Source: Auanema rhodensis
Lineage: Eukaryota > Animalia > Nematoda
NCBI GenBank assembly: GCA_964057225.1
Contig: OZ059899.1
Coordinates: 17,608,001 to 17,672,000 of the forward strand
DNA length: 64,000 bases
Reading direction: 5' to 3'
Part shown: one piece after another, positions 1-64,000 of the stretch
How the letters are laid out: the number at the start of each line of letters is the position of its first letter
Numbering within the stretch: the stretch's first letter is position 1
Program-made: the position numbers and the translations under genes
Notes under the pieces: generated by a model
Seen by the model: only the letters and a program-made list of their open reading frames with translations
Told to the model about the DNA's origin: nothing
The model's database searches: none

Positions 1-779
1 TCAAAATGTTTTTGGAAGCAATGTTGAGTGTACATGGAAACTCAACATACACTAATGCATCATTTTTCAAACGATCATGACTAATTTTTGTATTGAGGGT
101 TTCTCAATGTAGTATAGTGCATTCGATGCGGATTTTTAAGCTGCGTCGATCTGTGTTATCAGATTTGCGCTAGCTTAAAAATGCACCGAGATATCAACTG
201 ATATAAGTTCACACTTATAATCTCGATTTTCACCCTGAAGAATTAATTTTTTTGTTGAATAACATTGTCCATCGTCTTCACCTTGAAAAAAGGAATCTAA
301 AAACATCTACTTTTTGTAAAATTATTTTGAAATTTTTAGGGAAAATTTTTGTCAAAATGTTTTTGGAAGCAATGTTGAGTGTACATGGAAACTCAACATA
401 CACTAATGCATCATTTTTCAAACGATCATAACTAATTTTTGTATTAAGAGTTTCTCAATGTAGTATAGTGCATTCGATGCGGATTTTTAAGCTGCGTCGA
501 TCTGTGTTATCAGATTTGCGCTAGCTTAAAAAAGCACCGAGATATCAACTGATATAAGTTCACACTTATATCCTCGATTTTCACCCTGAAGAATTAATTT
601 TTTTGTTGAATAACATTGTCCATCGTCTTCGCCTTGAAAAAAGGAATCTAAAAACATCTACTTTTCGTGAAATTATTTCGAAATTTTTAGGTAAAATTTT
701 TGTCAAAATGTTTTTGAAAGCAATGTTGAGTGTACATGGAAACTCAACATACACTAATGCATCATTTTTCAAACGATCA

Positions 780-2200
780 TAACTAATTTTTGTATTAAGA
801 GTTTCTCAATGTAGTATAGTGCATTTGATGCGGATTTTTAAGCTGCGTCGATCTGTGTTATCAGATTTGCGCTAGCTTAAAAATGCACCAAGATATCAAC
901 TGAAATAAGTTAACACATATATCCTCGATTTTCACCCTGAAGAATTAATTTTTTCGTTGAATAACATTGTCCATCGTCTTCGCCTTGAAAAAAGGAATCT
1001 AAAAACATCTACTTTTTGTGAAATTATTTTGAAACTTTTAGGGAAAATTTTTGTCAAAATGTTTTTGGAAGCAATGTTGAGTGTACATGGAAACTCAACA
1101 TACACTAATGCATCATTTTTCAAACGATCATAACTAATTTTTGTATTAAGAGTTTCTCAATGTAGTATAGTGCATTCGATGCGGATTTTTAAGCTGCGTC
1201 GATCTGTGTTATCAGATTTGCGCTAGCTTAAAAAAGCACCGAGATATCAACTGTTATAAGTTCACACTTATATCCTCGATTTTCACCCTGAAGAATTAAT
1301 TTTTTTGTTGAATAACATTGTCCATCGTCTTCGCCTTGAAAAAAGAAATCTAAAAACATCTACTTTTTGTGAAATTATTTTGAAATTTTTAGGCAAAATT
1401 TTTGTCAAAATGTTTTTGAAAGCAATGTTGAGTGTACATGGAAACTCAACATACACTAATGCATCATTTTTCAAACGATCATAACTAATTTTTGTATTAA
1501 GAGTTTCTCAATGTAGTATAGTGCATTCGATGCGGATTTTTAAGCTGCGTCGATCTGTGTTATCAGATTTGCGCTAGCTTAAAAATGCACCAAGATATCA
1601 ACTGAAATAAGTTAACACATATATCCTCGATTTTCACCCTGAAGAATTAATTTTTTCGTTGAATAACATTGTCCATCGTCTTCGCCTTGAAAAAAGGAAT
1701 CTAAAAACATCTACTTTTTGTGAAATTATTTTGAAACTTTTAGGGAAAATTTTTGTCAAAATGTTTTTGGAAGCAATGTTGAGTGTACATGGAAACTCAA
1801 CATACACTAATGCATCATTTTTCAAACGATCATAACTAATTTTTGTATTAAGAGTTTCTCAATGTAGTATAGTGCATTCGATGCGGATTTTTAAGCTGCG
1901 TCGATCTGTGTTATCAGATTTGCGCTAGCTTAAAAAAGCACCGAGATATCAACTGTTATAAGTTCACACTTATATCCTCGATTTTCACCCTGAAGAATTA
2001 ATTTTTTTGTTGAATAACATTGTCCATCGTCTTCGCCTTGAAAAAAGGAATCTAAAAACATCTACTTTTTGTGAAATTATTTTGAAATTTTTAGGCAAAA
2101 TTTTTGTCAAAATGTTTTTGAAAGCAATGTTGAGTGTACATGGAAACTCAACATACACTAATGCATCATTTTTCAAACGATCATAACTAATTTTTGTATT
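780..2200 (-). repeat. Local dimeric (702-bp) higher-order repeat of 351-mers
   Basis: Monomer types alternate. The rare alleles gaaacttt, gcaccaag and tgaaataagttaacacata (monomers 932/1634) and actgttata, aggcaaaa (monomers 1283/1985) recur at 702-bp spacing. Confidence 0.8.
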
Positions 2201-3199
2201 AAGCGTTTTTCAATGTAGTATAGTGCATTCGATGCTGATTTTTAAGCTGCGTCGATCTGTGTTATCAGATTTGCGCTAGCTTAAAAATGCACCGAGATAT
2301 CAACTGATATAAGTTTACACTTATATCCTCGATTTTCACCCTGGAGAATTAATTTTTTCGTTGAATAACATTGTCCATCGTCTTCGCCTTGAAAAAAGGA
2401 ATCTAAAAACATCTACTTTTTGTGAAATTATTTTGAAATTTTTAGGGAAAATTTTGGTCAAAATGTTTTTGGAAGCAATGTTGAGTGTACATGGAAACTC
2501 AACATACACTAATGCATCATTTTTCAAACGATCATGACTAATTTTTGTATTGAGGGTTTCTCAATGTAGTATAGTGCATTCGATGCGGATTTTTAAGCTG
2601 CGTCGATCTGTGTTATCAGATTTGCGCTAGCTTAAAAATGCACCGAGATATCAACTAATATAAGTTCACACTTATATCCTCGATTTTCACCCTGAAGAAT
2701 TAATTTTTTTGTTGAATAACATTGTCCATCGTCTTCGCCTTGAAAAAAGGAATCTAAAAACATCTACTTTTCGTGAAATTATTTCGAAATTTTTAGGTAA
2801 AATTTTTGTCAAAATGTTTTTGAAAGCAATGTTGAGTGTACATGGAAACTCAACATACACTAATGCATCATTTTTCAAACGATCATGACTAATTTTTGTA
2901 TTGAGGGTTTCTCAATGTAGTATAGTGCATTCGATGCGGATTTTTAAGCTGCGTCGATCTGTGTTATCAGATTTGCGCTAGCTTAAAAATGCACCGAGAT
3001 ATCAACTGAAATAAGTTAACACATATATCCTCGATTTTCACCCTGAAGAATTAATTTTTTCGTTGAATAACATTGTCCATCGTCTTCGCCTTGAAAAAAG
3101 GAATCTAAAAACATCTACTTTTTGTGAAATTATTTTGAAATTTTTAGGGAAAATTTTTGTCAAAATGTTTTTGGAAGCAATGTTGAGTGTACATGGAAA

Positions 3200-4990
3200 C
3201 TCAACATACACTAATGCATCATTTTTCAAACGATCATAACTAATTTTTGTATTAAGAGTTTCTCAATGTAGTATAGTGCATTTGATGCGGATTTTTAAGC
3301 TGCGTCGATCTGTGTTATCAGATTTGCGCTAGCTTAAAAATGCACCGAGATATCAACTGTTATAAGTTCACACTTATATCCTCGATTTTCACCCTGAAGA
3401 ATTAATTTTTTTGTTGAATAACATTGTCCATCGTCTTCGCCTTGAAAAAAGAAATCTAAAAACATCTACTTTTTGTGAAATTATTTTGAAATTTTTCGGG
3501 AAAATTTTTGTCAAAATGTTTTTGAAAGCAATGTTGAGTGTACATGGAAACTCAACATACACTAATGCATCATTTTTCAAACGATCATAACTAATTTTTG
3601 TATCAAGCGTTTCTCAATGTTGTATAGTGCATTCGATGCGGATTTTTAAGCTGCGTCGATCTGTGTTATCAGATTTGCGCTAGCTTAAAAATGCACCGAG
3701 ATATCAACTGATATAAGTTTACACTTATATCCTCGATTTTCACCCTGGAGAATTAATTTTTTCGTTGAATAACATTGTCCATCGTCTTCGCCTTAAAAAA
3801 AGGAATCTAAAAACATCTACTTTTTGTGAAATTATTTTGAAATTTTTAGGGAAAATTTTGGTCAAAATGTTTTTGGAAGCAATGTTGAGTGTACATGGAA
3901 ACTCAACATACACTAATGCATCATTTTTCAAACGATCATGACTAATTTTTGTATTGAGGGTTTCTCAATGTAGTATAGTGCATTCGATGCGGATTTTTAA
4001 GCTGCGTCGATCTGTGTTATCAGATTTGCGCTAGCTTAAAAATGCACCGAGATATCAACTGATATAAGTTCACACTTATATCCTCGATTTTCACCCTGAA
4101 AAATTGATTTTTTCGTTGAATAACATTGTCCATCGTCTTTGCCTTGAAAAAAGGAATCTAAAAACATCTACTTTTTGTGAAATTATTTTGAAATTTTTAG
4201 GGAAAATTTTTGTCAAAATGTTTTTGGAAGCAATGTTGAGTGTACATGGAAACTCAACATACACTAATGCATCATTTTTCAAACGATCATAACTAATTTT
4301 TGTATTAAGAGTTTCTCAATGTAGTATAGTGCATTTGATGCGGATTTTTAAGCTGCGTCGATCTGTGTTATCAGATTTGCGCTAGCTTAAAAATGCACCG
4401 AGATATCAACTGTTATAAGTTCACACTTATATCCTCGATTTTCACCCTGAAGAATTAATTTTTTTGTTGAATAACATTGTCCATCGTCTTCGCCTTGAAA
4501 AAAGAAATCTAAAAACATCTACTTTTTGTGAAATTATTTTGAAATTTTTCGGGAAAATTTTTGTCAAAATGTTTTTGAAAGCAATGTTGAGTGTACATGG
4601 AAACTCAACATACACTAATGCATCATTTTTCAAACGATCATAACTAATTTTTGTATCAAGCGTTTCTCAATGTAGTATAGTGCATTCGATGCGGATTTTT
4701 AAGCTGCGTCGATCTGTGTTATCAGATTTGCGCTAGCTTAAAAATGCACCGAGATATCAACTGATATAAGTTTACACTTATATCCTCGATTTTCACCCTG
4801 GAGAATTAATTTTTTCGTTGAATAACATTGTCCATCGTCTTCGCCTTGAAAAAAGGAATCTAAAAACATCTACTTTTTGTGAAATTATTTTGAAATTTTT
4901 AGGGAAAATTTTGGTCAAAATGTTTTTGGAAGCAATGTTGAGTGTACATGGAAACTCAACATACACTAATGCATCATTTTTCAAACGATC
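3200..4990 (-). repeat. Partial trimeric (1053-bp) repeat of 351-mers
   Basis: The allele run gcatttgatg / actgttata / tttttcggg / ctggag / ttttggtc recurs at +1053 (monomers 3389,3740 vs 4442,4793) with about two SNPs. Confidence 0.7.
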
Positions 4991-5547
4991 ATAACTAATT
5001 TTTGTATCAAGCGTTTCTCAATGTAGTATAGTGCATTCGATGCGGATTTTTAAGCTGCGTCGATCTGTGTTATCAGATTTGCGCTAGCTTAAAAAAGCAC
5101 CGAGATATCAACTGATATAAGTTCACACTTATATCCTCGATTTTCACCCTGAAGAATTAATTTTTTTGTTGAATAACATTGTCCATCGTCTTCGCCTTGA
5201 AAAAAGGAATCTAAAAACATCTACTTTTCGTGAAATTATTTCGAAATTTTTAGGTAAAATTTTTGTCAAAATGTTTTTGGAAGCAATGTTGAGTGTACAT
5301 GGAAACTCAACATACACTAATGCATCATTTTTCAAACGATCATGACTAATTTTTGTATTGAGGGTTTCTCAATGTTGTATAGTGCATTCGATGCGGATTT
5401 TTAAGCTGCGTCGATCTGTGTTATCAGATTTGCGCTAGCTTAAAAAAGCACCGAGATATCAACTGATATAAGTTCACACTTATATCCTCGATTTTCACCC
5501 TGAAGAATTAATTTTTTTGTTGAATAACATTGTCCATCGTCTTCACT

Positions 5548-8500
5548 TTGAAAAAAGGAATCTAAAAACATCTACTTTTTGTAAAATTATTTTGAAATTT
5601 TTAGGGAAAATTTTTGTCAAAATGTTTTTGGAAGCAATGTTGAGTGTACATGGAAACTCAACATACACTAATGCATCATTTTTCAAACGATCATAACTAA
5701 TTTTTGTATCAAGCGTTTCTCAATGTAGTATAGTGCATTCGATGCGGATTTTTAAGCTGCGTCGATCTGTGTTATCAGATTTGCGCTAGCTTAAAAAAGC
5801 ACCGAGATATCAACTGATATAAGTTCACACTTATATCCTCGATTTTCACCCTGAAGAATTAATTTTTTTGTTGAATAACATTGTCCATCGTCTTCGCCTT
5901 GAAAAAAGGAATCTAAAAACATCTACTTTTTGTGAAATTATTTTGAAATTTTTAGGGAAAATTTTTGTCAAAATGTTTTTGGAAGCAATGTTGAGTGTAC
6001 ATGGAAACTCAACATACACTAATACATCATTTTTTAAACGATCATAACTAATTTTTGTATTGAGGGTTTCTCAATGTAGTATAGTGCATTCGATGCGGAT
6101 TTTTAAGCTGCGTCGATCTGTGTTATCAGATTTGCGCTAGCTTAAAAAAGCACCGAGATATCAACTGATATAAGTTCACACTTATATCCTCGATTTTCAC
6201 CCTGAAAAATTGATTTTTTCGTTGAATAACATTGTCCATCGTCTTCGCCTTGAAAAAAGGAATCTAAAAACAACTACTTTTTGTGAAATTATTTCGAAAT
6301 TTTTAGGTAAAATTTTTGTCAAAATGTTTTTGAAAGCAATGTTGAGTGTACATGGAAACTCAACATACACTAATGCATCATTTTTCAAACGATCATGACT
6401 AATTTTTGTATTGAGCGTTTCTCAATGTAGTATAATGCACTCGATGCGGATTTTTAAGCTGCGTCGATCTGTGTTATCAGATTTGCGCTATCTTTAAAAT
6501 GCACCGATATATCAACTGATATAAGTTCACACTTATATCCTCGATTTTCACCCTGAAAATTTGATTTTTTCGTTGAATAACATTGTCCATCGTCTTCGCC
6601 TTGAAAAAAGGAATCTAAAAACATCTACTTTTTGTGAAATTATTTTGAAATTTTTAGGGAAAATTTTGGTCAAAATGTTTTTGGAAGCAATGTTGAGTGT
6701 ACATGGAAACTCAACATACACTAATGCATCATTTTTCAAACGTAAGCTGCGTCGATCTGTGTTATCAGATTTGCGCTAGCTTAAAAAAGCACCGAGATAT
6801 CAACTGATATAAGTTCACACTTATATCCTCGATTTTCACCCTGAAAAATTGATTTTTTCGTTGAATAACATTGTCCATCGTCTTCGCCTTGAAAAAAGGA
6901 ATCTAAAAACAACTACTTTTTGTGAAATTATTTCGAAATTTTTAGGTAAAATTTTTGTCAAAATGTTTTTGAAAGCAATGTTGAGTGTACATGGAAACTC
7001 AACATACACTAATGCATCATTTTTCAAACGATCATGACTAATTTTTGTATTGAGCGTTTCTCAATGTAGTATAATGCACTCGATGCGGATTTTTAAGCTG
7101 CGTCGATCTGTGTTATCAGATTTGCGCTATCTTTAAAATGCACCGATATATCAACTGATATAAGTTCACACTTATATCCTCGATTTTCACCCTGAAAATT
7201 TGATTTTTTCGTTGAATAACATTGTCCATCGTCTTCGCCTTGAAAAAAGGAATCTAAAAACATCTACTTTTTGTGAAATTATTTTGAAATTTTTAGGGAA
7301 AATTTTGGTCAAAATGTTTTTGGAAGCAATGTTGAGTGTACATGGAAACTCAACATACACTAATGCATCATTTTTCAAACGATCATAACTAATTTTTGTA
7401 TTAAGCGTTTCTCAATGTTGTATAGTGCATTCGATGCGGATTTTTAAGCTGCGTCGATCTGTGTTATCAGATTTGCGCTAGCTTAAAAATGCACCGAGAT
7501 ATCAACTGATATAAGTTCACACTTATATCCTCGATTTTCACCCTGAAAAATTGATTTTTTCGTTGAATAACATTGTCCATCGTCTTTGCCTTGAAAAAAG
7601 GAATCTAAAAACAACTACTTTCTGTGAAATTATTTCGAAATTTTTAGGGAAAATTTTTGTCAAAATGTTTTTGGAAGCAATGTTGAGTGTACATGGAAAC
7701 TCAACATACACTAATGCATCATTTTTCAAACGATCATAACTAATTTTTGTATTGAGCGTTTCTCAATGTTGTATAGTGCATTCGATGCGGATTTTTAAGC
7801 TGCGTCGATCTATGTTATCAGATTTGCGCTATCTTAAAAATGCACCGAGATATCAACTGATATAAGTTCACACTTATAATCTCGATTTTCACCCTGAAGA
7901 ATTAATTTTTTTGTTGAATAACATTGTCCATCGTCTTCACCTTGAAAAAAGGAATCTAAAAACATCTACTTTTTGTAAAATTATTTTGAAATTTTTAGGG
8001 AAAATTTTTGTCAAAATGTTTTTGGAAGCAATGTTGAGTGTACATGGAAACTCAACATACACTAATGCATCATTTTTCAAACGATCATAACTAATTTTTG
8101 TATCAAGCGTTTCTCAATGTAGTATAGTGCATTCGATGCGGATTTTTAAGCTGCGTCGATCTGTGTTATCAGATTTGCGCTAGCTTAAAAAAGCACCGAG
8201 ATATCAACTGATATAAGTTCACACTTATATCCTCGATTTTCACCCTGAAGAATTAATTTTTTTGTTGAATAACATTGTCCATCGTCTTCGCCTTGAAAAA
8301 AGGAATCTAAAAACATCTACTTTTTGTGAAATTATTTTGAAATTTTTAGGGAAAATTTTTGTCAAAATGTTTTTGGAAGCAATGTTGAGTGTACATGGAA
8401 ACTCAACATACACTAATACATCATTTTTTAAACGATCATAACTAATTTTTGTATTGAGGGTTTCTCAATGTAGTATAGTGCATTCGATGCGGATTTTTAA

Positions 8501-10585
8501 GCTGCGTCGATCTGTGTTATCAGATTTGCGCTAGCTTAAAAAAGCACCGAGATATCAACTGATATAAGTTCACACTTATATCCTCGATTTTCACCCTGAA
8601 AAATTGATTTTTTCGTTGAATAACATTGTCCATCGTCTTCGCCTTGAAAAAAGGAATCTAAAAACAACTACTTTTTGTGAAATTATTTCGAAATTTTTAG
8701 GTAAAATTTTTGTCAAAATGTTTTTGAAAGCAATGTTGAGTGTACATGGAAACTCAACATACACTAATGCATCATTTTTCAAACGATCATGACTAATTTT
8801 TGTATTGAGCGTTTCTCAATGTAGTATAATGCACTCGATGCGGATTTTTAAGCTGCGTCGATCTGTGTTATCAGATTTGCGCTATCTTTAAAATGCACCG
8901 ATATATCAACTGATATAAGTTCACACTTATATCCTCGATTTTCACCCTGAAAATTTGATTTTTTCGTTGAATAACATTGTCCATCGTCTTCGCCTTGAAA
9001 AAAGGAATCTAAAAACATCTACTTTTTGTGAAATTATTTTGAAATTTTTAGGGAAAATTTTGGTCAAAATGTTTTTGGAAGCAATGTTGAGTGTACATGG
9101 AAACTCAACATACACTAATGCATCATTTTTCAAACGTAAGCTGCGTCGATCTGTGTTATCAGATTTGCGCTAGCTTAAAAAAGCACCGAGATATCAACTG
9201 ATATAAGTTCACACTTATATCCTCGATTTTCACCCTGAAAAATTGATTTTTTCGTTGAATAACATTGTCCATCGTCTTCGCCTTGAAAAAAGGAATCTAA
9301 AAACAACTACTTTTTGTGAAATTATTTCGAAATTTTTAGGTAAAATTTTTGTCAAAATGTTTTTGAAAGCAATGTTGAGTGTACATGGAAACTCAACATA
9401 CACTAATGCATCATTTTTCAAACGATCATGACTAATTTTTGTATTGAGCGTTTCTCAATGTAGTATAATGCACTCGATGCGGATTTTTAAGCTGCGTCGA
9501 TCTGTGTTATCAGATTTGCGCTATCTTTAAAATGCACCGATATATCAACTGATATAAGTTCACACTTATATCCTCGATTTTCACCCTGAAAATTTGATTT
9601 TTTCGTTGAATAACATTGTCCATCGTCTTCGCCTTGAAAAAAGGAATCTAAAAACATCTACTTTTTGTGAAATTATTTTGAAATTTTTAGGGAAAATTTT
9701 GGTCAAAATGTTTTTGGAAGCAATGTTGAGTGTACATGGAAACTCAACATACACTAATGCATCATTTTTCAAACGATCATAACTAATTTTTGTATTAAGC
9801 GTTTCTCAATGTTGTATAGTGCATTCGATGCGGATTTTTAAGCTGCGTCGATCTGTGTTATCAGATTTGCGCTAGCTTAAAAATGCACCGAGATATCAAC
9901 TGATATAAGTTCACACTTATATCCTCGATTTTCACCCTGAAAAATTGATTTTTTCGTTGAATAACATTGTCCATCGTCTTTGCCTTGAAAAAAGGAATCT
10001 AAAAACAACTACTTTCTGTGAAATTATTTCGAAATTTTTAGGGAAAATTTTTGTCAAAATGTTTTTGGAAGCAATGTTGAGTGTACATGGAAACTCAACA
10101 TACACTAATGCATCATTTTTCAAACGATCATAACTAATTTTTGTATTGAGCGTTTCTCAATGTTGTATAGTGCATTCGATGCGGATTTTTAAGCTGCGTC
10201 GATCTATGTTATCAGATTTGCGCTATCTTAAAAATGCACCGAGATATCAACTGATATAAGTTCACACTTATAATCTCGATTTTCACCCTGAAGAATTAAT
10301 TTTTTTGTTGAATAACATTGTCCATCGTCTTCACCTTGAAAAAAGGAATCTAAAAACATCTACTTTTTGTAAAATTATTTTGAAATTTTTAGGGAAAATT
10401 TTTGTCAAAATGTTTTTGGAAGCAATGTTGAGTGTACATGGAAACTCAACATACACTAATGCATCATTTTTCAAACGATCATAACTAATTTTTGTATCAA
10501 GCGTTTCTCAATGTAGTATAGTGCATTCGATGCGGATTTTTAAGCTGCGTCGATCTGTGTTATCAGATTTGCGCTAGCTTAAAAA
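5548..10585 (-). repeat. 7-mer higher-order repeat, 2394 bp (6x351+288), about 2.1 near-identical copies
   Basis: ORF positions 6197/8591, 6548/8942, 6836/9230, 7187/9581 and 7538/9932 all differ by 2394. The truncated-monomer junction recurs at 6742 and 9136. Identity breaks at 8192 vs 10586. Confidence 0.92.
6104..7381 (-). repeat. Out-of-register 639-bp tandem duplication creating a 288-bp monomer (second instance 8498-9775)
   Basis: 6104-6742 (taagctgcg...caaacg) is repeated at 6743-7381. The junction caaacg|taagctg lacks 63 bp of the normal monomer. Confidence 0.9.
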
Positions 10586-11024
10586 TGCACCGAGATATCA
10601 ACTGATATAAGTTTACACTTATATCCTCGATTTTCACCCTGGAGAATCAATTTTTTCGTTGAATAACATTGTCCATCGTCTTCGCCTTGAAAAAAGGAAT
10701 CTAAAAACATCTACTTTTTGTGAAATTATTTTGAAATTTTTAGGGAAAATTTTGGTCAAAATGTTTTTGGAAGCAATGTTGAGTGTACATGGAAACTCAA
10801 CATACACTAATGCATCATTTTTCAAACGATCATGACTAATTTTTGTATTGAGGGTTTCTCAATGTAGTATAGTGCATTCGATGCGGATTTTTAAGCTGCG
10901 TCGATCTGTGTTATCAGATTTGCGCTAGCTTAAAAATGCACCGAGATATCAACTGATATAAGTTCACACTTATATCCTCGATTTTCACCCTGAAAAATTG
11001 ATTTTTTCGTTGAATAACATTGTG

Positions 11025-13544
11025 TACATGTCATGTGTTTACTGCTCTAGCTGGTTTTCAATTTTTATGAGATTTTGCATCATCTTACAACAAATTCAAT
11101 TAAATCTAACATGAAATATTTTTTCGTTTTGAAAAGCATTGAATATCATTGTTCCTTATAATATTGGATTTGAATATTGCTTCGTTAGTTTTATGATTTT
11201 TGCTACTACATGTCATGTGTTTACTGCTCTAGCTGGATTTCAATTTTTATGAGATTTTTCATCATCTTACAACAAATTCAATTGAATCTAACATGAGTTA
11301 TTTTTTCGTTTTGAAAAGCATTGAATATCATTGTTCCTTGTAATATTGGATTTGATTATTGCTTTGTTAGCTTTATGATTTTTGCTACTGTGTAGCTTCA
11401 GTTTGCTGCTCTAGCTGGTTTTCAATTTTTATGAGATATTTCATCATCTTACAACAAATTCAATTGAATCTAACATGAAATATTTTTTCGTTTTGAAAAG
11501 CATTGAATATCATTGTTCCTTGTAATATTGGATTTGATTATTGCTTTGTTAGCTTTATGATTTTTGCTACTGTGTAGCTTCAGTTTGCTGCTCTAGCTGG
11601 TTTTCAATTTTTATGAGATATTTCATCATCTTACAACAAATTCAATTGAATCTAACATGAAATATTTTTTCGTTTTGAAAAGCATTGAATATCATTGTTC
11701 CTTGTAATATTGGATTTGATTATTGCTTTGTTAGCTTCATGATTTTTGCTACTGTATAGCTTCAGTTTGCTGCTCTAGCTGGTTTTCAATTTTTATGAGA
11801 TTTTTCATCATCTTACAAGAAATTCAATTGAATCTAACATGAATTTTTTTTTCGTTTTGAAAAGCATTGAATATCATTGTTCCTTGTAATATTGGATTTG
11901 AATATTGCTTCGTTAGTTTTATGATTTTTGCTACTATATGTCATTTGTTTACTGCTCTAGCTGCTGTTCACTTTTTATGAGATTTTTCATCATCTTACAA
12001 CAAATTCAATTGAATCTAACATGAAATATTTTTTCGTTTTGAAAAGCATTGAATATCATTGTTCCTTATAATATTGGATTTGAATATTGCTTCGTTAGTT
12101 TTATGATTTTTGCTACTGTATAGCTTCAGTTTGCTGCTCTAGCTGGTTTTCAATTTTTATGAGATTTTTCATCATCTTACAACAAATTCAATTGAATCTA
12201 ACATGAGTTATTTTTTCGTTTTGAAAAGCATTGAATATCATTGTTCCTTGTAATATTGGATTTGATTATTGCTTTGTTAGCTTTATGATTTTTGCTACTG
12301 TATAGCTTCAGTTTGCTGCTCTAGCTGGTTTTCAATTTTTATGAGATTTTGCATCATCTTACAACAAATTCAATTAAATCTAACATGAAATATTTTTTCG
12401 TTTTGAAAAGCATTGAATATCATTGTTCCTTATAATATTGGATTTGAATATTGCTTCGATAGTTTTATGATTTTTGCTACTACATGTCATGTGTTTACTG
12501 CTCTAGCTGGTTTTCAATTTTTATGAGATTTTTCATCATCTTACAACAAATTCAATTGAATCTAACATGAGTTATTTTTTCGTTTTGAGAAGCATTGAAT
12601 ATCATTGTTCCTTGTAATATTGGATTTGATTATTGCTTTGTTAGCTTTATGATTTTTGCTACTGTGTAGCTTCAGTTTGCTGCTCTAGCTGGTTTTCAAT
12701 TTTTATGAGATTTTTCATCATCTTACAACAAATTCAATTGAATCTAACATGAAATATTTTTTCGTTTTGAAAAGCATTGAATATCATTGTTCCTTGTAAT
12801 ATTGGATTTGATTATTGCTTTGTTAGCTTTATGATTTTTGCTACTGTATAGCTTCAGTTTGCTGCTCTAGCTGGTTTTCACTTTTTATGAGATTTTTCAT
12901 CATCTTACAACAAATTCAATTGAATCTCATGTGAATTATTTTTTTTTTTAAAAAAGCATTGAATATCATTGTTCCTTATAATATTGGATTTGAATATTGC
13001 TTTGTTAGCTTTAAGATGTTTGCTTATGCATAGCTTCAGTTTGCTGCTCTAGCTGGTTTTCACTTTTTATGAGATTTTTCATCATCTTACAACAAATTCA
13101 ATTGAATCTCATGTGAATTATTTTTTTTTTTAAAAAAGCATTGAATATCATTGTTCCTTATAATATTGGATTTGAATATTGCTTTGTTAGCTTTATGATT
13201 TTTGCTACTGTTTAGCTTCAGTTTGCTGCTCTAGCTGGTTTTCACTTTTTATGAGATTTTTCATCATCTTACAACAAATTCAATTGAATCTCATGTGAAT
13301 TATTTTTTTTTTTAAAAAAGCATTGAATTTCATTGTTTCTTGTAATGATGGATTTGAATATTGCTTTGTTAGCTTTATGATTTTTGCTACTGTTTAGCTT
13401 CAGTTTGCTGCTCTAGCTGGTTTTCAATTTTTATGAGATTTTTCATCATCTTACAACAAATTCAATTGAATCTAACATGAAATATTTTTTCGTTTTGAAA
13501 AGCATTGAATTTCATTGTTTCTTGTAATGATGGATTTGAATATT
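11025..13544 (+). repeat. 182-bp satellite array, orientation 1 (about 13.8 monomers)
   Basis: gctctagctgg occurs at 11044, 11226, 11408... (period 182). No extended similarity to the 351-mer is visible by eye. Confidence 0.97.
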
Positions 13545-13546
13545 CA
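13537..13546. other. Inversion junction in the 182-bp satellite; perfect 10-bp palindrome TGAATATTCA
   Basis: The forward monomer matches to ...gatttgaatatt (13544), then one extra C, then the reverse-complement monomer starts atctcataaaaattg (13546). Confidence 0.95.
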
Positions 13547-16500
13547 TCTCATAAAAATTGAAAACCAGCTAGAGCAGCAAACTGAAGCTATACAGTAGCA
13601 AAAATCATGAAGCTAACAAAGCAATAATCAAATCCAATATTACAAGGAACAATGATATTCAATGCTTTTCAAAACGAAAAAATAACTCATGTTAGATTCA
13701 ATTGAATTTGTTGTAAGATGATGAAAAATCTCATAAAAATTGAAATCCAGCTAGAGCAGTAAACACATGACATGTAGTAGCAAAAATCATAAAACTAACA
13801 AAGCAATATTCAAATCCAATATTACAAGAAACAATTATATTCACTACTATTTGAAACGAAAAAATAGTTCATATTAGATTCAAATGAATTTGTTGCAAGA
13901 TTATGAAAAATCTCATAATAATAGAAAACCAGCTAGAAGCAAACTGAAGCTATGCAGTAGCAAAATCTTAAAACAAACGAAGCAATATTCAAATCAATTA
14001 TTACAAGAAATAATGATATTCAATGCTTTTTAAAAAGAAAAAATAATTCATCTTAGATTCAATTGAATTTGTTGTGAGATTATGAAAAATCTAATAAAAA
14101 GTGAAAACCAGCTAAAGCAGCAAACTGAAGCTATGCAGAAGCAAAAATGTTAAAGGTAACAAAGCAATATTCAAATCCATCATTACAAGAAACAATGAAA
14201 TTCAATGCTTTTTAAAAAAAAAAAATTCATATTAGATTCAAATGAATTTGTTGTCACAGGACGATTATTCTCATAAAAATGGAAAACTAGCTAGAGCAGC
14301 AAACTGAAGCTATACAGTAGCAAAAATCATAAAGCTAACAAAGCAATAATCAAATCCAATATTACAAGGAACAATGATATTCAATGCTTTTCAAAACGAA
14401 AAAATAACTCATGTTAGATTCAATTGAATTTGTTGTAAGATGATGAAAAATCTCATAAAAATTGAAAACCAGCTAGAGCAGTAAACACATGACATGTAGT
14501 AGCAAAAATCATAAAACTATCGAAGCAATATTCAAATCCAATATTATAAGGAACAATGATATTCAATGCTTTTCAAAACGAAAAAATATTTCATGTTAGA
14601 TTCAATTGAATTTGTTGTAAGATGATGAAATATCTCATAAAAATTGAAAACCAGCTAGAGCAGTAAACACATGACATGTAGTAGCAAAAATCATAAAACT
14701 ATCGAAGCAATATTCAAATCCAATATTATAAGGAACAATGATATTCAATGCTTTTCAAAACGAAAAAACATTTCATGTTAGATTTAATTGAATTTGTTGT
14801 AAGATGATGCAAAATCTCATAAAAATTGAAAACCAGCTAGAGCAGCAAACTGAAGCTATACAGTAGCAAAAATCATGAAGCTAACAAAGCAATAATCAAA
14901 TCCAATATTACAAGGAACAATGATATTCAATGCTTTTCAAAACGAAAAAATATTTCATGTTAGATTCAATTGAATTTGTTGTAAGATGATGAAATATCTC
15001 ATAAAAATTGAAAACCAGCTAGAGCAGCAAACTGAAGCTACACAGTAGCAAAAATCATAAAGCTAACAAAGCAATAATCAAATCCAATATTACAAGGAAC
15101 AATGATATTCAATGCTTTTCAAAACGAAAAAATAACTCATGTTAGATTCAATTGAATTTGTTGTAAGATGATGAAAAATCTCATAAAAATTGAAATCCAG
15201 CTAGAGCAGTAAACACATGACATGTAGTAGCAAAAATCATAAAGCTAACAAAGCAATAATCAAATCCAATATTACAAGGAACAATGATATTCAATGCTTT
15301 TCAAAACGAAAAAATAACTCATGTTAGATTCAATTGAATTTGTTGTAAGATGATGAAAAATCTCATAAAAATTGAAATCCAGCTAGAGCAGTAAACACAT
15401 GACATGTAGTAGCAAAAATCATAAAACTAACGAAGCAATATTCAAATCCAATATTATAAGGAACAATGATATTCAATGCTTTTCAAAACGAAAAAATATT
15501 TCATGTTAGATTCAATTGAATTTGTTGTAAGATGATGAAATATCTCATAAAAATTGAAAAACAGCTAGAGCAGTAAACACATGACATGTAGTAGCAAAAA
15601 TCATAAAACTATCGAAGCAATATTCAAATCCAATATTATAAGGAACAATGATATTCAATGCTTTTCAAAACGAAAAAACATTTCATGTTAGATTTAATTG
15701 AATTTGTTGTAAGATGATGCAAAATCTCATAAAAATTGAAAACCAGCTAGAGCAGCAAACTGAAGCTATACAGTAGCAAAAATCATGAAGCTAACAAAGC
15801 AATAATCAAATCCAATATTACAAGGAACAATGATATTCAATGCTTTTCAAAACGAAAAAATATTTCATGTTAGATTCAATTGAATTTGTTGTAAGATGAT
15901 GAAATATCTCATAAAAATTGAAAACCAGCTAGAGCAGCAAACTGAAGCTACACAGTAGCAAAAATCATAAAGCTAACAAAGCAATAATCAAATCCAATAT
16001 TACAAGGAACAATGATATTCAATGCTTTTCAAAACGAAAAAATAACTCATGTTAGATTCAATTGAATTTGTTGTAAGATGATGAAAAATCTCATAAAAAT
16101 TGAAATCCAGCTAGAGCAGTAAACACATGACATGTAGTAGCAAAAATCATAAAGCTAACAAAGCAATAATCAAATCCAATATTACAAGGAACAATGATAT
16201 TCAATGCTTTTCAAAACGAAAAAATAACTCATGTTAGATTCAATTGAATTTGTTGTAAGATGATGAAAAATCTCATAAAAATTGAAATCCAGCTAGAGCA
16301 GTAAACACATGACATGTAGTAGCAAAAATCATAAAACTAACGAAGCAATATTCAAATCCAATATTATAAGGAACAATGATATTCAATGCTTTTCAAAACG
16401 AAAAAATATTTCATGTTAGATTTAATTGAATTTGTTGTAAGATGATGCAAAATCTCATAAAAATTGAAAACCAGCTAGAGCAGCAAACTGAAGCTATACA

Positions 16501-23810: not shown

Positions 23811-23936
23811 GCTAGCGCAAATCTGATAACACAGATCGACGCAGCTTAAAAATCCGCATCGAATGCACTATACTACATTGAGAAACGCTTAATACAAAAA
23901 TTAGTTATGATCGTTTGAAAAAAGATGCATTAGTGT

Positions 23937-23964
23937 ATGTTGAGTTTCCATGTACACTCAACAT
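23937..23964. other. Example of the 28-bp dyad ATGTTGAGT-N10-ACTCAACAT present in each 351-mer
   Basis: Perfect 9-bp inverted repeat with a 10-nt spacer, read directly from the sequence. Confidence 0.92.
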
Positions 23965-24146
23965 TGCTTCCAAAAACATTTTGACAAAAATTTTTCCGAA
24001 AAATTTCAAAATAATTTCGCAAAAAGTAGATGTTTTTAGATTTCTTTTTTCAAGGCAAAGACGATGGACAAAGTTATTCAACGAAAAAATTAATTCTGCA
24101 GGGTGAAAATCGAGGATATATGTGTGAACTTATATCAGTTGATATC

Positions 24147-48320: not shown

Positions 48321-51009
48321 TGAAAATCGAGGATATAAGTGTGAACTTATATCAGTTGATATCTCGGTGCATTTTTAAGCTAGCGCAAATCTGATAACAC
48401 AGATCGACGCAGCTTAAAAATCCGCATCGAATGCACTATACTACATTGAGAAATGCTTGATACAAAAATTAGTTATGATCGTTTGAAAAAAGATGCATTA
48501 GTGTATGTTGAGTTTCCATGTACACTCAACATTGCTTCCAAAAACATTTTGACAAAAATTTTTCCGAAAAATTTCAAAATAATTTTGCAAAAAGTAGATG
48601 TTTTTAGATTCCTTTTTTCAAGGCAAAGACGATGGACAAAGTTATTCAACGAAAAAATTAATTCTGCAGGGTGAAAATCGAGGATATAAGTGTGAACTTA
48701 TATCAGTTGATATCTCGGTGCATTTTTAAGCTAGCGCAAATCTGATAACACAGATCGACGCAGCTTAAAAATCCGCATCGAATGCACTATACTACATTGA
48801 AAAACGCTTAATACAAAAATTAGTTATGATCGTTTGAAAAAAGATGCATTAGTGTATGTTGAGTTTCCATGTACACTCAACATTGCTTCCAAAAACATTT
48901 TGACAAAAATTTTTCCGAAAAATTTCAAAATAATTTTGCAAAAAGTAGATGTTTTTAGATTCCTTTTTTCAAGGCAAAGACGATGGACAAAGTTATTCAA
49001 CGAAAAAATTAATTCTGCAGGGTGAAAATCGAGGATATAAGTGTGAACTTATATCAGTTGATATCTCGGTGCATTTTTAAGCTAGCGCAAATCTGATAAC
49101 ACAGATCGACGCAGCTTAAAAATTCGCATCGATTGCACTATACTACATTGAGAAACGCATAATACAAAACTTAGTTATGATCGTTTGAAAAAAGATGCAT
49201 TAGTGTATGTTGAGTTTCCATGTACACTCAACATTGCTTCCAAAAACATTTTTACAAAAATTTTTCCGAAAAATTTCGAAATAATTTCGCAAAAAGTAGA
49301 TGTTTTTAGAATCCTTTTTTCAAGGCAAAGACGATGGACATTGTTATTCAACGAAAAAATTGATTCTGCAGGGTGAAAATCGAGGATATAAGTGTGAACT
49401 TATATCAGTTGATATCTCGGTGCATTTTTAAGCTAGCGCAAATCTGATAACACAGATCGACGCAGCTTAAAAATCCGCATCAAATGCACTATACTACATT
49501 GAAAAACGCTTAATACAAAAGTTAGTTATGATCGTTTGAAAAAAGATGCATTAGTGTATGTTGAGTTTCCATGTACACTCAACATTGCTTCCAAAAACAT
49601 TTTGACAAAAATTTTTCCGAAAAATTTCAAAATAATTTCGCAAAAAGTAGATGTTTTTAGATTCCTTTTTTCAAGGCAAAGACGATGGACAATGTTATTC
49701 AACGAAAAAATTAATTCTGCAGGGTGAAAATCGAGGATATAAGTGTGAACTTATATCAGTTGATATCTCGGTGCATTTTTAAGCTAGCGTAAATCTGATA
49801 ACACAGATCGACGCAGCTTAAAAATCCGCATCGAATGCACTATACTACATTGAAAAACGCTTAATACAAAAATTAGTTATGATCGTTTGAAAAATGATGC
49901 ATTAGTGTATGTTGAGTTTCCATGTACACTCAACATTGCTTCCAAAAACATTTTGACAAAAATTTTTCCAAAAAATTTCAAAATAATTTCGCAAAAAGTA
50001 AAAGTTTTTAGATTTCTTTTTTCAAGGCAAAGACGATGGACAATGTTATTCAACGAAAAAATTAATTCTGCAGGGTGAAAATCGAGGATATAAGTGTGAA
50101 CTTATATCAGTTGATATCTCGGTGCATTTTTAAGCTAGCGCAAATCTGATAACACAGATCGACGCAGCTTAAAAATCCGCATCGAATGCACTATACTACA
50201 TTGAAAAACGCTTAATACAAAAATTAGTTATGATCGTTTGAAAAAAGATGCATTAGTGTATGTTGAGTTTCCATGTACACTCAACATTGCTTCCAAAAAC
50301 ATTTTGACAAAAATTTTTCCAAAAAATTTCAGAATAATTTCGCAAAAAGTAAATGTTTTTAGATTCCTTTTTTCAAGGCAAAGACGATGGACAATGTTAT
50401 TCAACGAAAAAATTAATTCTGCAGGGTGAAAATCTAGGATATAAGTGTGAACTTATATCAGTTGATATCTCGGTGCATTTTTAAGCTAGCGCAAATCTGA
50501 TAACACAGATCGACGCAGCTTAAAAATCCGCATCGAATTCACTATACTACATTGAAAAACGCTTAATACAAAAATTAGTTATGATTGTTTGAAAAAAGAT
50601 GCATTAGTGTATGTTGAGTTTCCATGTACACTCAACATTGCTTCCAAAAACATTTTGACAAAAATTTTTCCGAAAAATTTCAAAATAATTTTGCAAAAAG
50701 TAGATGTTTTTAGATTCCTTTTTTCAAGGCAAAGACGATGGACAAAGTTATTCAACGAAAAAATTAATTCTGCAGGGTGAAAATCGAGGATATAAGTGTG
50801 AACTTATATCAGTTGATATCTCGGTGCATTTTCAAGCTAGCGCAAATCTGATAACACAGATCGACGCAGCTTAAAAATCCGCATCGATTGCACTATACTA
50901 CATTGAGAAACGCATAATACAAAACTTAGTTATGATCGTTTGAAAAAAGATGCATTAGTGTATGTTGAGTTTCCATGTACACTCAACATTGCTTCCAAAA
51001 ACATTTTTA

Positions 51010-60500: not shown

Positions 60501-63500
60501 AAATTTCAAAATAATTTCGCAAAAAGTAAATGGTTTTAGATTCCTTTTTTCAAGGCAAAGACGATGGACAATGTTATTCAACGAAAAAATTAATTCTGCA
60601 GGGTGAAAATCGAGGATATAAGTGTGAACTTATATCAGTTGATATCTCGGTGCATTTTTAAGCTAGCGCAAATCTGATAACACAGATCGACGCAGCTTAA
60701 AAATCCGCATCGAATGCACTATACTACATTGAAAAACGCTTAATACAAAAATTAGTTATGATTGTTTGAAAAAAGATGCATTAGTGTATGTTGAGTTTCC
60801 ATGTACACTCAACATTGCTTCCAAAAACATTTTGACAAAAATTTTTCCAAAAAATTTCAAGATAATTACGCAAAAAGTAAATGTTTTTAGATTCCTTTTT
60901 TCAAGGCAAAGACGATGGACAATGTTATTCAACGAAAAAATTAATTCTGCAGGGTGAAAATCGAGGATATAAGTGTGAACTTATATCAGTTGATATCTCG
61001 GTGCATTTTTAAGCTAGCGCAAATCTGATAACACAGATCGACGCAGCTTAAAAATCCGCATCGAATGCACTATACTACATTGAAAAACGCTTAATACAAA
61101 AATTAGTTATGATCGTTTGAAAAATGATGCATTAGTGTATGTTGAGTTTCCATGTACACTCAACATTGCTTCCAAAAACATTTTGACAAAAATTTTTCCG
61201 AAAAATTTCAAAATAATTTCGCAAAAAGTAGATGTTTTTAGATTCCTTTTTTCAAGGCAAAGACGATGGACAATGTTATTCAACGAAAAAATTAATTCTG
61301 CAGGGTGAAAATCGAGGATATAAGTGTGAACTTATATCAGTTGATATCTCGGTGCATTTTTAAGCTAGCGCAAATCTGATAACACAGATCGACGCAGCTT
61401 AAAAATCCGCATCGAATGCACTATACTACATTGAAAAACGCTTAATACAAAAATTAGTTATGATTGTTTGAAAAAAGATGCATTAGTGTATGTTGAGTTT
61501 CCATGTACACTCAACATTGCTTCCAAAAACATTTTGACAAAAATTTTTCCAAAAAATTTCAAGATAATTACGCAAAAAGTAAATGTTTTTAGATTCCTTT
61601 TTTCAAGGCAAAGACGATGGACAATGTTATTCAACGAAAAAATTAATTCTGCAGGGTGAAAATCGAGGATATAAGTGTGAACTTATATCAGTTGATATCT
61701 CGGTGCATTTTTAAGCTAGCGCAAATCTGATAACACAGATCGACGCAGCTTAAAAATCCGCATCGAATGCACTATACTACATTGAAAAACGCTTAATACA
61801 AAAATTAGTTATGATCGTTTGAAAAAAGATGCATTAGTGTATGTTGAGTTTCCATGTACACTCAACATTGCTTCCAAAAACATTTTGACAAAAATTTTTC
61901 CAAAAAATTTCAAAATAATTTCGCAAAAAGTAAATGTTTTTAGATTCCTTTTTTCAAGGCAAAGACGATGGACAATGTTATTCAACGAAAAAATTAATTC
62001 TGCAGGGTGAAAATCTAGGATATAAGTGTGAACTTATATCAGTTGATATCTCGGTGCATTTTTAAGCTAGCGCAAATCTGATAACACAGATCGACGCAGC
62101 TTAAAAATCCGCATCGAATGCACTATACTACATTGAAAAACGCTTAATACAAAAATTAGTTATGATCGTTTGAAAAAAGATGCATTAGTGTATGTTGAGT
62201 TTCCATGTACACTCAACATTGCTTCCAAAAACATTTTGACAAAAATTTTTCCAAAAAATTTCAAAATAATTTCGCAAAAAGTAAATGTTTTTAGATTCCT
62301 TTTTTCAAGGCAAAGACGATGGACAATGTTATTCAACGAAAAAATTAATTCTGCAGGGTGAAAATCTAGGATATAAGTGTGAACTTATATCAGTTGATAT
62401 CTCGGTGCATTTTTAAGCTAGCGCAAATCTGATAACACAGATCGACGCAGCTTAAAAATCCGCATCGAATGCACTATACTACATTGAAAAACGCTCAATA
62501 CAAAAATTAGTTATGATCGTTTGAAAAATGATGCATTAGTGTATGTTGAGTTTCCATGTACACTCAACATTGCTTCCAAAAACATTTTGACAAAAATTTT
62601 TCCAAAAAATTTCAAGATAATTTCGCAAAAAGTAAATGTTTTTAGATTCCTTTTTTCAAGGCAAAGACGATGGACAATGTTATTCAACGAAAAAATTAAT
62701 TCTGCAGGGTGAAAATCGAGGATATAAGTGTGAACTTATATCAGTTGATATCTCGGTGCATTTTTAAGCTAGCGCAAATCTGATAACACAGATCGACGCA
62801 GCTTAAAAATCCGCATCGAATGCACTATACTACATTGAAAAACGCTTAATACAAAAATTAGTTATGATCGTTTGAAAAATGATGCATTAGTGTATGTTGA
62901 GTTTCCATGTACACTCAACATTGCTTCCAAAAACATTTTGACAAAAATTTTTCCGAAAAATTTCAAAATAATTTCGCAAAAAGTAGATGTTTTTAGATTC
63001 CTTTTTTCAAGGCAAAGACGATGGACAATGTTATTTAACGAAAAAATTAATTCTGCAGGGTGAAAATCGAGGATATAAGTGTGAACTTATATCAGTTGAT
63101 ATCTCGGTGCATTTTTAAGCTAGCGCAAATCTGATAACACAGATCGACGCAGCTTAAAAATCCGCATCGAATGCACTATACTACATTGAAAAACGCTTAA
63201 TACAAAAATTAGTTATGATCGTTTGAAAAAAGATGCATTAGTGTATGTTGAGTTTCCATGTACACTCAACATTGCTTCCAAAAACATTTTGACAAAAATT
63301 TTTCCAAAAAATTTCAAAATAATTTCGCAAAAAGTAAATGTTTTTAGATTCCTTTTTTCAAGGCAAAGACGATGGACAATGTTATTCAACGAAAAAATTA
63401 ATTCTGCAGGGTGAAAATCTAGGATATAAGTGTGAACTTATATCAGTTGATATCTCGGTGCATTTTTAAGCTAGCGCAAATCTGATAACACAGATCGACG

Positions 63501-64000
63501 CAGCTTAAAAATCCGCATCGAATGCACTATACTACATTGAAAAACGCTTAATACAAAAATTAGTTATGATCGTTTGAAAAAAGATGCATTAGTGTATGTT
63601 GAGTTTCCATGTACACTCAACATTGCTTCCAAAAACATTTTGACAAAAATTTTTCCAAAAAATTTCAAAATAATTTCGCAAAAAGTAAATGTTTTTAGAT
63701 TCCTTTTTTCAAGGCAAAGACGATGGACAATGTTATTCAACGAAAAAATTAATTCTGCAGGGTGAAAATCTAGGATATAAGTGTGAACTTATATCAGTTG
63801 ATATCTCGGTGCATTTTTAAGCTAGCGCAAATCTGATAACACAGATCGACGCAGCTTAAAAATCCGCATCGAATGCACTATACTACATTGAAAAACGCTT
63901 AATACAAAAATTAGTGATGATCGTTTGAAAAAAGATGCATTAGTGTATGTTGAGTTTCCATGTACACTCAACATTGCTTCCAAAAACATTTTGACAAAAA

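Follow-up and report, generated by a model that had tools for sequence, protein, structure and literature searches.

How two tandem repeats came to be nested and reversed within each other is the question raised by the window analysed here, a 64-kb stretch of Auanema rhodense DNA lying at 17.608-17.672 Mb of the 21.47-Mb autosome scaffold C7. Block limits were determined by TRF, together with BLAST searches using one monomer per satellite family, and this gave the order 351b(-), 182(-), 182(+), 351a(+). The first block (positions 1-11023, minus strand; 34 BLAST hits, ~31 monomers) consists of the 'b' subfamily of a 351-bp satellite, and is followed by the minus arm (11037-13544; 13.8 monomers) and the plus arm (13546-23810; 56.4 monomers) of a 182-bp satellite, after which the 'a' subfamily of the 351-bp satellite fills the remainder on the plus strand (23810-64000; 115 hits, 114.5 monomers). 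TRF scores of these arrays ranged from 3501 to 75986. AT skew changed sign at the same block edges: in the 351 blocks it went from about -0.08 to +0.09, and in the 182 blocks from -0.15/-0.18 to +0.27. The left array extends at least 110 kb leftward beyond the window, and the right one runs on to C7:17754714. No tRNA and no open reading frame of 120 aa or more was found in the 64 kb, and lag profiles revealed no clear higher-order repeat in the 182 array, with values of 0.92-0.94 at every lag. The two satellites share no sequence relationship: their best local alignment scored 27, whereas shuffled sequences gave 21.8 ± 3.1 with a maximum of 41. A relationship of the 351 unit to a 182 dimer (364 bp) was likewise rejected.

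The three junctions between these blocks are almost bare. At J1 (11024-11036), the 351 satellite is left at consensus 35 and the 182 satellite entered at consensus 126 across 13 nt of filler; among the scored candidates, a full-length match to this junction was obtained for the window alone. At the 182 strand switch, J2, the minus arm exits at consensus 167, the end of an AATATT site, and the plus arm enters at consensus 90, the spacer being one orphan C at 13545. J3 (23810/23811) joins 182 consensus 170 directly to 351 consensus 128. Its 182-side exit lies within the same AATATT site as the minus exit of J2, while its 351-side entry falls in the left arm of a perfect 11-nt inverted repeat, separated by a 29-nt loop, that is present in the 351 unit. 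The 29-nt pattern spanning J2 and the 30-nt pattern spanning J3 each had exactly two occurrences in the genome. No transposon sequence, terminal repeats or target-site duplication was detected at J1-J3, where the fillers measure 13, 1 and 0 nt, and the description given in the initial annotation, of two satellites that both switch strand across near-bare junctions, was thus borne out by the block limits and junctions alike. About 6 of 8 breakpoints in the 351 unit fell within or beside inverted-repeat arms, which was not a significant excess over the ~45% unit coverage (hand-estimated binomial p ~0.1), and the grouping of 182 breakpoints at consensus 159-175 was marginal by hand estimate after dependent ends had been merged.

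The arrangement is not confined to the window. At least 13 copies of the module were found, of which 11 have an asymmetric centre termed S2 (five on C7, three on C6 and three on C3, the flanks of the C6 and C3 islands being sampled) and two have the J2 centre together with J3, namely the window copy (W) and a paralog (P) located 164-168 kb downstream on C7. The five S2 islands of C7 (A, D, E, G and F) show the same block order as the window; A, D, E and F have a common left junction, and the S2 centre was present, where fetched, in all five including G. The centre spacers of the two centre types are 1 nt and 21 nt, and the minus arm of the S2 family enters at phase 159 and exits at phase 160. 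Every one of the ten 182 islands of C7 and C6 occupies a switch from 351(-) to 351(+), so that the co-location of 351 strand switches with 182 islands raised in the initial annotation was upheld; it is explained by common descent of one module, with its shared S2 centre, and not by a recurrent hub. No S2 spacer is left in W or P, and all three of their junctions are unlike those of the S2 family; their common descent with it is accordingly argued from the architecture, the order of monomers and the subfamilies of the flanks, and not from a shared junction.

The relationship between W and P is far closer. Both lie on the plus strand with four blocks in the same order, their J2 copies being 164,218 bp and their J3 copies 168,223 bp apart. 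Around J3 they are 99.59% identical over 4,167 bp (0.4% divergence), and, compared one monomer at a time, the plus arms run collinear at ~100%, with 57 monomers in W and 79 in P. The 182 minus arm measures 2.5 kb in W and 17.8 kb in P, with monomer types common to both. A 351(+)|351(-) junction at C7:17754714, J0', is single-copy in the genome and would represent the novel head-to-tail join of a duplication that gave rise to the two copies. The left 182 arms are identical for only ~60-140 nt from J2, and the left 351 arms are out of register, reaching 98.9% at best over 1.9 kb and 96.9% overall; we infer the left extent of the recent duplication for these two reasons. In the 351a flank, no in-register signal of the duplication was obtained past ~2 kb (99.0% vs 98.8% in other registers), and the right 351 flank of P spans at most 90 kb, compared with the 123 kb expected from a simple tandem duplication.

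Given these comparisons, we consider it fairly probable, albeit with appreciable doubt, that the window is one inherited copy of an old composite module that spread by segmental duplication and, in the lineage of the window, underwent an inversion of 182 monomers in place, a duplication of ~165 kb and a deletion that formed J1. The starting point would have been an S2-type ancestor carrying a long 182(-) arm. A two-break end-joining inversion of ~10-14 kb of this arm would then have created J2 and J3 together, with one break in the AATATT site (consensus 167-170) and the other adjoining the old centre. Loss of this centre would have taken the short plus arm and the former right junction with it. 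The direct segmental duplication of ~165 kb would have followed, yielding W and P and the new join J0', after which a deletion across the left boundary of W would have produced J1 and left the minus arm of 2.5 kb, with subsequent gains and losses of whole monomers accounting for the 57 and 79 monomers of the plus arms.

The minus-arm exit at 167 (J2) and the plus-arm exit at 170 (J3) overlap by 3-4 nt within one AATATT site, and re-inversion therefore restores an in-phase array. Furthermore, the plus arm of W followed by its minus arm ran collinear with the minus arm of island A, which is uninverted: the chain score was 9.0, compared with 3.4 ± 0.7 in shuffles. The same chain with the plus arm reversed scored 4.7 and was not collinear. 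The 3-4-nt inverted overlap and the order reversed in place are also the features by which the event resembles a known end-joining two-break inversion with staggered ends. It differs in that the reciprocal pair of the second break is missing in W and P: the plus entry at consensus 90 is without a phase partner, since J3 goes straight into 351(+), and a simultaneous or later deletion must therefore be assumed. It differs, too, in lying wholly within satellite, so that the breakpoints are known by repeat phase alone. The predicted pre-inversion 182(-)|351(+) junction was absent genome-wide at up to 3 mismatches, and hence no uninverted relic of the W/P lineage exists in the assembly.

A single palindromic fold-back, producing an inverted duplication over a 182|351 boundary whose symmetry was later erased by array turnover, would also account for the nested mirror order, as this is what one fold-back over a compound boundary is expected to give. 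The two arms of each satellite were compared in all registers. When reverse-complemented, the left 182 arm aligned with the right one at 93.5-93.8% whatever the register, and the 351 arms likewise matched each other at ~96.0% throughout, so that neither satellite has a privileged mirror register. The monomer type strings of the two arms are not alike, and a mirror order from the centre outward was not observed. Since single linkage at 99.4% lumped most 351 monomers into one type, these were typed by diagnostic columns instead: the consensuses of the 351 arms differ at six columns (24, 65, 241, 313, 316 and 337), which represent subfamily alleles and distinguish every minus-strand 351 domain from every plus-strand one between 17.0 and 20.65 Mb of C7 (~3.6 Mb). 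Arm lengths and junction phases of the window are likewise unequal between left and right, and its outer junctions, J1 (351:35|182:126) and J3 (182:170|351:128), are not mirrored, all of which agrees with the statement in the initial annotation that the arms are not mirror copies.

The outer junctions of P speak for a fold-back. Here J1' (351:160|182:175) and J3 are near mirror images, with 182 phases of 175 and 170 and 351 phases of 160 and 128 (offsets of 5 and 32 positions), and the latter phases flank the 11-nt inverted repeat and its 29-nt loop; the tiny centre spacers of 1 and 21 nt point in the same direction. However, besides the missing mirror register, the 351 arms belong to different subfamilies in every sampled module, the monomer order suits the in-place inversion of an array that was once minus throughout, and the entry at 159 and exit at 160 of the S2-family minus arm are unpredicted by a fold-back. 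This explanation is consequently regarded as unlikely for the window, although a fold-back may instead explain how the ancestral module arose.

The extended plus arm seen in W and P could also have come from homologous recombination between inverted 182 arms: a flip, and then three separate deletions through which the centre and both outer junctions were replaced. An instance of such a flip is available in island E, the centre of which is exactly reverse-complementary to the centre shared by A, D, G and F, and the plus arm of which contains monomers that are centre-proximal in the minus arms of A and D (chain score 16.6 vs 2.8 ± 0.5). In island E, inverted arms drove an inversion. The monomer order expected after a flip is identical to that expected after an end-joining inversion; more events are needed, however, the 3-4-nt phase overlap of J2 and J3 is left as a coincidence of ~4%, and the S2 spacer is missing from W and P, making this route decidedly improbable for these two copies. 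Flip-flop inversion through inverted-repeat recombination occurs in plastid genomes and in the yeast 2-micron plasmid. The reversed centre and exchanged arm material of island E are as expected from comparable crossing-over between inverted arms, but island E represents one fixed difference between paralogs, not an equilibrium of isomers, and the island arms are made up of satellite monomers that are ~92-93% identical rather than of long identical repeats.

It was also considered whether the end-joining inversion and duplication proposed above might be mimicked by assembly error, through chimeric joins or the false duplication of one locus in a satellite block. Megabase satellite blocks are hard to assemble at ~29-fold read depth, and 11 Mb of the assembly is unplaced. 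The two copies of J2 and J3 nevertheless occur in unlike surroundings (57 vs 79 monomers, 2.5 vs 17.8 kb of minus arm, 0.4% divergence), and junctions of the S2 type were found again in 11 places. Moreover, joins of unrelated satellites with untemplated filler presumably could not come from overlap-based assembly and would have to exist in the reads. An artefact of this kind is therefore thought very unlikely.

The chromosomal setting bears on the remaining explanation. The germline assembly comprises 180,911,798 bases, in keeping with the published 180.9 Mb. The chromosome map was drawn from 400-bp samples at 10-150 kb spacing, a density at which smaller islands or switches can be missed. On C7, samples at 16.6 and 16.8 Mb were non-satellite, and 77 of the 78 samples between 17.0 and 21.47 Mb were satellite (57 of the 351-bp repeat, 18 of AT-1 and 2 of the 182-bp repeat), which places the window ~0.7 Mb into the right-terminal satellite block. 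The published AT-1 FISH probe matched 153,090 genome sites at 176-bp spacing and the published XT-2 probe 31,326 sites at ~342-bp spacing, with none for the reversed control of either. According to a preprint, autosome ends of A. rhodense consist almost wholly of two tandem repeats, AT-1 and AT-2, and are germline-restricted (bioRxiv 10.64898/2026.08.27.747507); the window lies in the same genome and in the same kind of two-repeat autosome end. On the basis of this preprint and of its position, the window DNA reportedly belongs to a terminal block discarded from the soma, and the 351-bp repeat, given the 57 samples of it beside 18 of AT-1, is a candidate for AT-2. No discussion of repeat orientation, inversions or islands was found in a word search of the main text of that preprint, and a literature search for paired 351-bp and 182-bp satellites returned none.

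The proposal in the initial annotation that the window marks a rearrangement hub or chromatin-domain boundary in a (peri)centromere, with centromere-type or otherwise distinct chromatin on the 182 core, is barely credible: human peri/centromeric arrays do typically contain strand switches and islands of one satellite within another (10.1101/2021.07.12.452052) and 351 switches do coincide with 182 islands here, but the (peri)centromere reading fails because rhabditid nematodes are holocentric (10.1101/2020.09.04.283127) and because the block is terminal and of a class reported as soma-eliminated. The module, moreover, has at least 13 copies on three scaffolds and so marks no single locus. What stands of the hub is that the module is prone to rearrangement, as seen from the inversion in island E.

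The centromere reading is thereby corrected to one in which the structure sits in DNA that the body cells of a holocentric worm reportedly throw away. The germline-restricted blocks consist of large tandem superunits, made up of AT-1, 351b in minus orientation, a 182 island and 351a in plus orientation, rather than of uniform arrays, and such superunits are spread within and between chromosome ends, providing a first view of how these multi-megabase blocks are built in A. rhodense. The module probably has no function of its own and preserves a trace of mistakes in replication and repair within weakly constrained DNA. That the 182 core and its opposed 351 arrays are kept at ~13 sites on three chromosomes for some germline role is regarded as very unlikely; read-through transcription of the inverted arms might yield hairpin RNA and small RNAs that help to label the terminal blocks as heterochromatic or as destined for elimination, or the module might serve structurally, as a landmark when germline-restricted ends pair or cohere in meiosis.

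The module and its rearrangement are of an already known kind of satellite rearrangement. Long homogeneous human peri/centromeric arrays (T2T-CHM13; 10.1101/2021.07.12.452052) likewise contain clean, transposon-free strand switches and a second satellite embedded in the first, and breakpoints recur within one array family. In contrast to human HSat1A insertions, the flanks of which are in concordant orientation, the flanks in the A. rhodense window are inverted; the DNA is, furthermore, terminal, reportedly germline-restricted and from a holocentric host, and the switch and island together form a propagated module with shared junctions. Such junction 'fossils' let the order of inversion, duplication and deletion be read, and the germline-restricted blocks may be used as a natural archive of errors made in repair and replication where constraint is weak. 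J0', J1, J2, J3 and S2 could serve as markers for validation in reads, for FISH or for PCR in otherwise unmappable DNA.

Within the left 351b array of the window, two 288-bp monomers carrying a 63-bp deletion (consensus 167-229) were identified from the period-288 rows of TRF (6455-9424, minus strand). They lie 2,394 bp apart and constitute a local higher-order repeat of 6 x 351 + 288 bp, with the array restarting in TRF at 6743 and 9137 and partial monomers at 6621-6742/6743 and 9015/9137.

The window consisted of four satellite blocks, delimited by TRF and by one-monomer BLAST: a 351-bp array on the minus strand at 1-11023, a 182-bp array on the minus strand at 11037-13544, the reverse complement of the 182-bp array on the plus strand at 13546-23810 and the reverse complement of the 351-bp array on the plus strand at 23810-64000. 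The strand blocks were cross-checked by BLAST with one monomer per family as the query, which agreed with TRF, and sign flips in AT skew coincided with the block boundaries. Direct reading of the junctions against consensus coordinates placed the first (J1) between 351(-) position 35 and 182(-) position 126, with 13 nt of filler; the second (J2), at which the 182-bp satellite switches strand, between 182(-) position 167 and 182(+) position 90, with one base between; and the third (J3) between 182(+) position 170 and 351(+) position 128, with no filler. TRF, BLAST, AT skew and direct junction reading therefore concurred with the initial annotation, in which both satellites had been said to switch strand at clean junctions. 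Its further statement that the arms are not mirror copies also held, as reverse-complemented left arms compared with right arms gave the same background identity in every register (93.5-93.8% for the 182-bp arms and ~96.0% for the 351-bp arms). The observation was thus correct in all particulars tested. A comparison of the 351-bp and 182-bp unit sequences revealed no relatedness. TRF split the array at 1-11023 into three rows because it is interrupted by two 288-bp monomers (63-bp deletion, consensus 167-229) spaced 2,394 bp apart, which form a local higher-order repeat at 6455-9424; the same 2,394-bp periodicity was seen in the 351(-) arm of the downstream paralog described below. Within the plus-strand 351-bp array, the interval ~33000-48500 contained many variant monomer types in semi-regular order, between homogeneous flanks.

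A 29-nt pattern for J2 and a 30-nt pattern for J3 each occurred exactly twice genome-wide, in every case on the plus strand of C7, with spacings of 164,218 bp and 168,223 bp, respectively. The second occurrences belong to a paralog of the window's dyad, designated P (C7:17752001-17802000), in which 351(+) extends to 17754714 and is followed by 13.2 kb of 351(-), 17.8 kb of 182(-), J2, 14.3 kb of 182(+), J3 and 351(+). The two copies were 99.59% identical over 4,167 bp around J3, and their plus arms were collinear from J2 to J3, with gains and losses of whole monomers (57 versus 79 monomers, typed at 99% identity). A direct duplication of ~165 kb would have generated the pair, and the junction with which P opens (J0', 351(+)|351(-), C7:17754714), which is single-copy in the genome, would represent the one new join expected from such an event. 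The left junction of P (J1') joined 351 consensus 160 to 182 consensus 175, unlike J1, which was found in the window only. The short minus arm of the window matched those monomers of P's minus arm that lie nearest the centre, with some missing, and J1 probably arose through a subsequent deletion that spanned the left edge of this copy. The left 351-bp arms of the two copies had no common register, identity left of J2 dropped to background within ~140 nt, and P's right 351-bp flank fell short of the length expected from simple tandem duplication.

All remaining C7 islands of the 182-bp satellite with fetched edges were ordered 351(-), 182(-), 182(+), 351(+). These islands were A (17.3987-17.410 Mb), D (18.372-18.3845 Mb), E (19.4999-19.5122 Mb), G (left boundary between 19.6254 and 19.629 Mb, end at 19.6455 Mb) and F (20.4568-20.4836 Mb), and their junctions were unlike those of the window and P at all three positions. 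The left junction (351:304 to 182:159, 5 nt of filler) was fetched for A, D, E and F and was common to these four. All five carried an asymmetric centre, termed S2, in which the minus arm is left at 160, 21 nt of non-satellite spacer follow and the plus arm is entered at 17. Right junctions, fetched for four islands, came in three versions (89|84 in D and E, 126|253 in G and 72|253 in F), and plus arms were short, at 0.4-0.8 kb except in E (3.0 kb). The centre of island E (C7:19509110-19512157) was the exact reverse complement of those of A, D, G and F. In E's plus arm lay the first 13-14 monomers of the A/D minus arm (collinear chain score of 16.6 versus 2.8 ± 0.5); island E is an inversion via recombination between inverted 182-bp arms. 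A 30-nt S2 pattern occurred 11 times genome-wide, five times on C7 and three times each on C6 and C3. In flank samples, all three C6 modules ran from 351(-) at left to 351(+) at right, whereas all three C3 modules had 351(-) at left, followed by 182(-), 182(+) and, by 13 kb rightward, AT-1, a named A. rhodense repeat. On one side of the C3 modules (C3:20.44-21.99 Mb), AT-1(-) was present within 13 kb in place of a 351-bp array at the sampled points. Larger 182-bp arrays were observed on C5 (C5:1215704-1218754; 0.91-0.95, 1.216-1.244 and 1.61-1.63 Mb), with a 351(-)|182(-) junction of a different kind and one or more additional strand switches around 1233500-1233800; genome-wide searches with the S2 and J2 patterns gave no match at these arrays.

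The initial annotation had asked whether 351-bp strand switches co-locate with 182-bp islands across the genome. On a sampled map, a minus-to-plus 351 switch was found at 10/10 islands on C7 and C6, a co-location that results from shared descent, while plus-to-minus return switches held an AT-1 block or nothing (J0'). Between 17.35 and 20.65 Mb of C7, a superunit of AT-1(-), 351b(-), 182-bp island and 351a(+), with b and a denoting the minus and plus 351-bp subfamilies, was tandemly repeated at least seven times, at ~0.15-1.2 Mb each. The consensuses of the window's 351-bp arms differed at six columns, five of which separated all minus from all plus 351 domains where sampled in C7 17.0-20.65 Mb (G24, T65, C313, T316 and A337 in minus domains; A, G, T, G and G, respectively, in plus domains). 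These columns were derived from the window arms, and the domains outside the window's dyad and P are independent of that derivation. Diagnostic scores were 0.75-1.0 for minus domains and 0-0.05 for plus domains bar four exceptions, among them the lone partial monomer at 17.0 Mb (0.33) and monomers adjoining islands E and G (0.36 and 0.2). The subfamily state at C7 20.95-21.40 Mb was intermediate.

In the S2 family, the minus arm was entered at 159 in the islands with a fetched left junction (A, D, E and F) and left at 160 (A, D, G and F), with 17 as the minus-arm exit and 160 as the plus-arm entry in the flipped island E. Island E apart, an arm entered at 159 and left at 160 contains an integral number of units with one common cut point. 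It resembles an array that was inserted or formed locally more than the outcome of a fold-back and, again with the exception of E, would fit either integration of a linearized circular multimer or array birth in situ. A fold-back spanning a 182|351 boundary would, as a single event, have produced the nested order, and P's outer junctions are near mirror images on either side of a perfect inverted repeat of 11 nt (29-nt loop) in the 351-bp unit. However, the 351-bp arms belonged to different subfamilies in every module sampled, and the single cut point of the S2-family minus arm also argues against this origin, which is considered unlikely.

For the long plus arm of the window, an in-place inversion of 13546-23810 was tested in two ways, through repeat phase and monomer order. 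The minus arm ended at 167 and the plus arm at 170, both in one AATATT site, so that re-inversion of the plus arm restores an in-phase 182-bp array with a 3-4-nt overlap; the probability of such a phase overlap by chance is roughly 4%. As the uninverted reference for monomer order, the complete minus arm of island A was read centre-outward. When the plus arm of the window (J2 to J3) and then its minus arm (J2 to J1) were chained against this reference, the collinear score was 9.0 (shuffles 3.4 ± 0.7, maximum 5.8), while the control with the plus arm reversed scored 4.7, inside its own shuffle range (maximum 6.4). P's plus arm alone was also collinear with that of A (7.3; shuffles 2.9 ± 0.5). 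A recombination flip between inverted arms followed by three deletions would predict the same monomer order, and flips do occur, as in island E; this route leaves the phase overlap unpredicted, however, and is judged quite improbable. The long plus arm of the window and P more likely derives from in-place inversion of part of a 182-bp minus array. As S2, the short old plus arm and the old right junction were absent from both copies, that segment would have been lost during or after the inversion; the predicted intermediate junction was absent genome-wide. Each of the mechanisms invoked (inversion with a small overlap, flipping between inverted repeats, segmental duplication of blocks of satellite) is already known, and the novelty here is descriptive.

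No functional hints were found in the 64-kb window, which contained no genes, RNA genes or transposon, and searches for tRNA genes and ORFs of ≥120 aa gave none. The module was variable, with four right-junction versions and arm lengths of 0.4-17.8 kb, and is probably a by-product, without function, of errors of repair and replication in reportedly eliminated DNA with little constraint. Any function, for instance through hairpin or small RNAs or as a landmark for pairing, the last having been speculated for other repeats in the A. rhodense preprint (bioRxiv 10.64898/2026.08.27.747507), is very unlikely. Strand switches and satellite-in-satellite arrangements such as those seen here are well documented in human peri/centromeric arrays (10.1101/2021.07.12.452052). 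The (peri)centromeric frame proposed by the initial annotation is nevertheless inapplicable, as rhabditid nematode chromosomes are holocentric (10.1101/2020.09.04.283127).

The assembly (180,911,798 bases, 112 contigs) was compared with the preprint on the 180.9-Mb A. rhodense germline assembly, in which FISH probes are printed and the main text, to which the search was confined, contains no discussion of repeat orientation or inversions (bioRxiv 10.64898/2026.08.27.747507). The AT-1 probe had 153,090 matches in the genome at a spacing of 176 bp and the probe for XT-2, another named repeat, 31,326 matches at ~342 bp on C8; reversed control patterns of both gave zero matches genome-wide. The genome is thus the published assembly or a near-identical one. 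C7 (21,466,504 bases) was mapped discontinuously in 400-bp samples, which were non-satellite at 16.6 and 16.8 Mb; of 78 samples from 17.0-21.47 Mb, 57 were 351-bp repeat, 18 AT-1, two 182-bp repeat and one other. The window (C7:17608001-17672000) therefore lies ~0.6-0.8 Mb inside a right-terminal repeat block. From position, the block may be germline-restricted and the 351-bp repeat may correspond to the preprint's AT-2. Within the block, C7:17430001-17430400 was non-repetitive (22% G+C), with 351(+) samples on both sides. At C7:20800001-20800400, a diverged 182(-) sample (88.8% to consensus) had 351(+) to its left (20.65 Mb) and 351(-) to its right (20.95 Mb), flanks in the opposite arrangement to those of all other islands.
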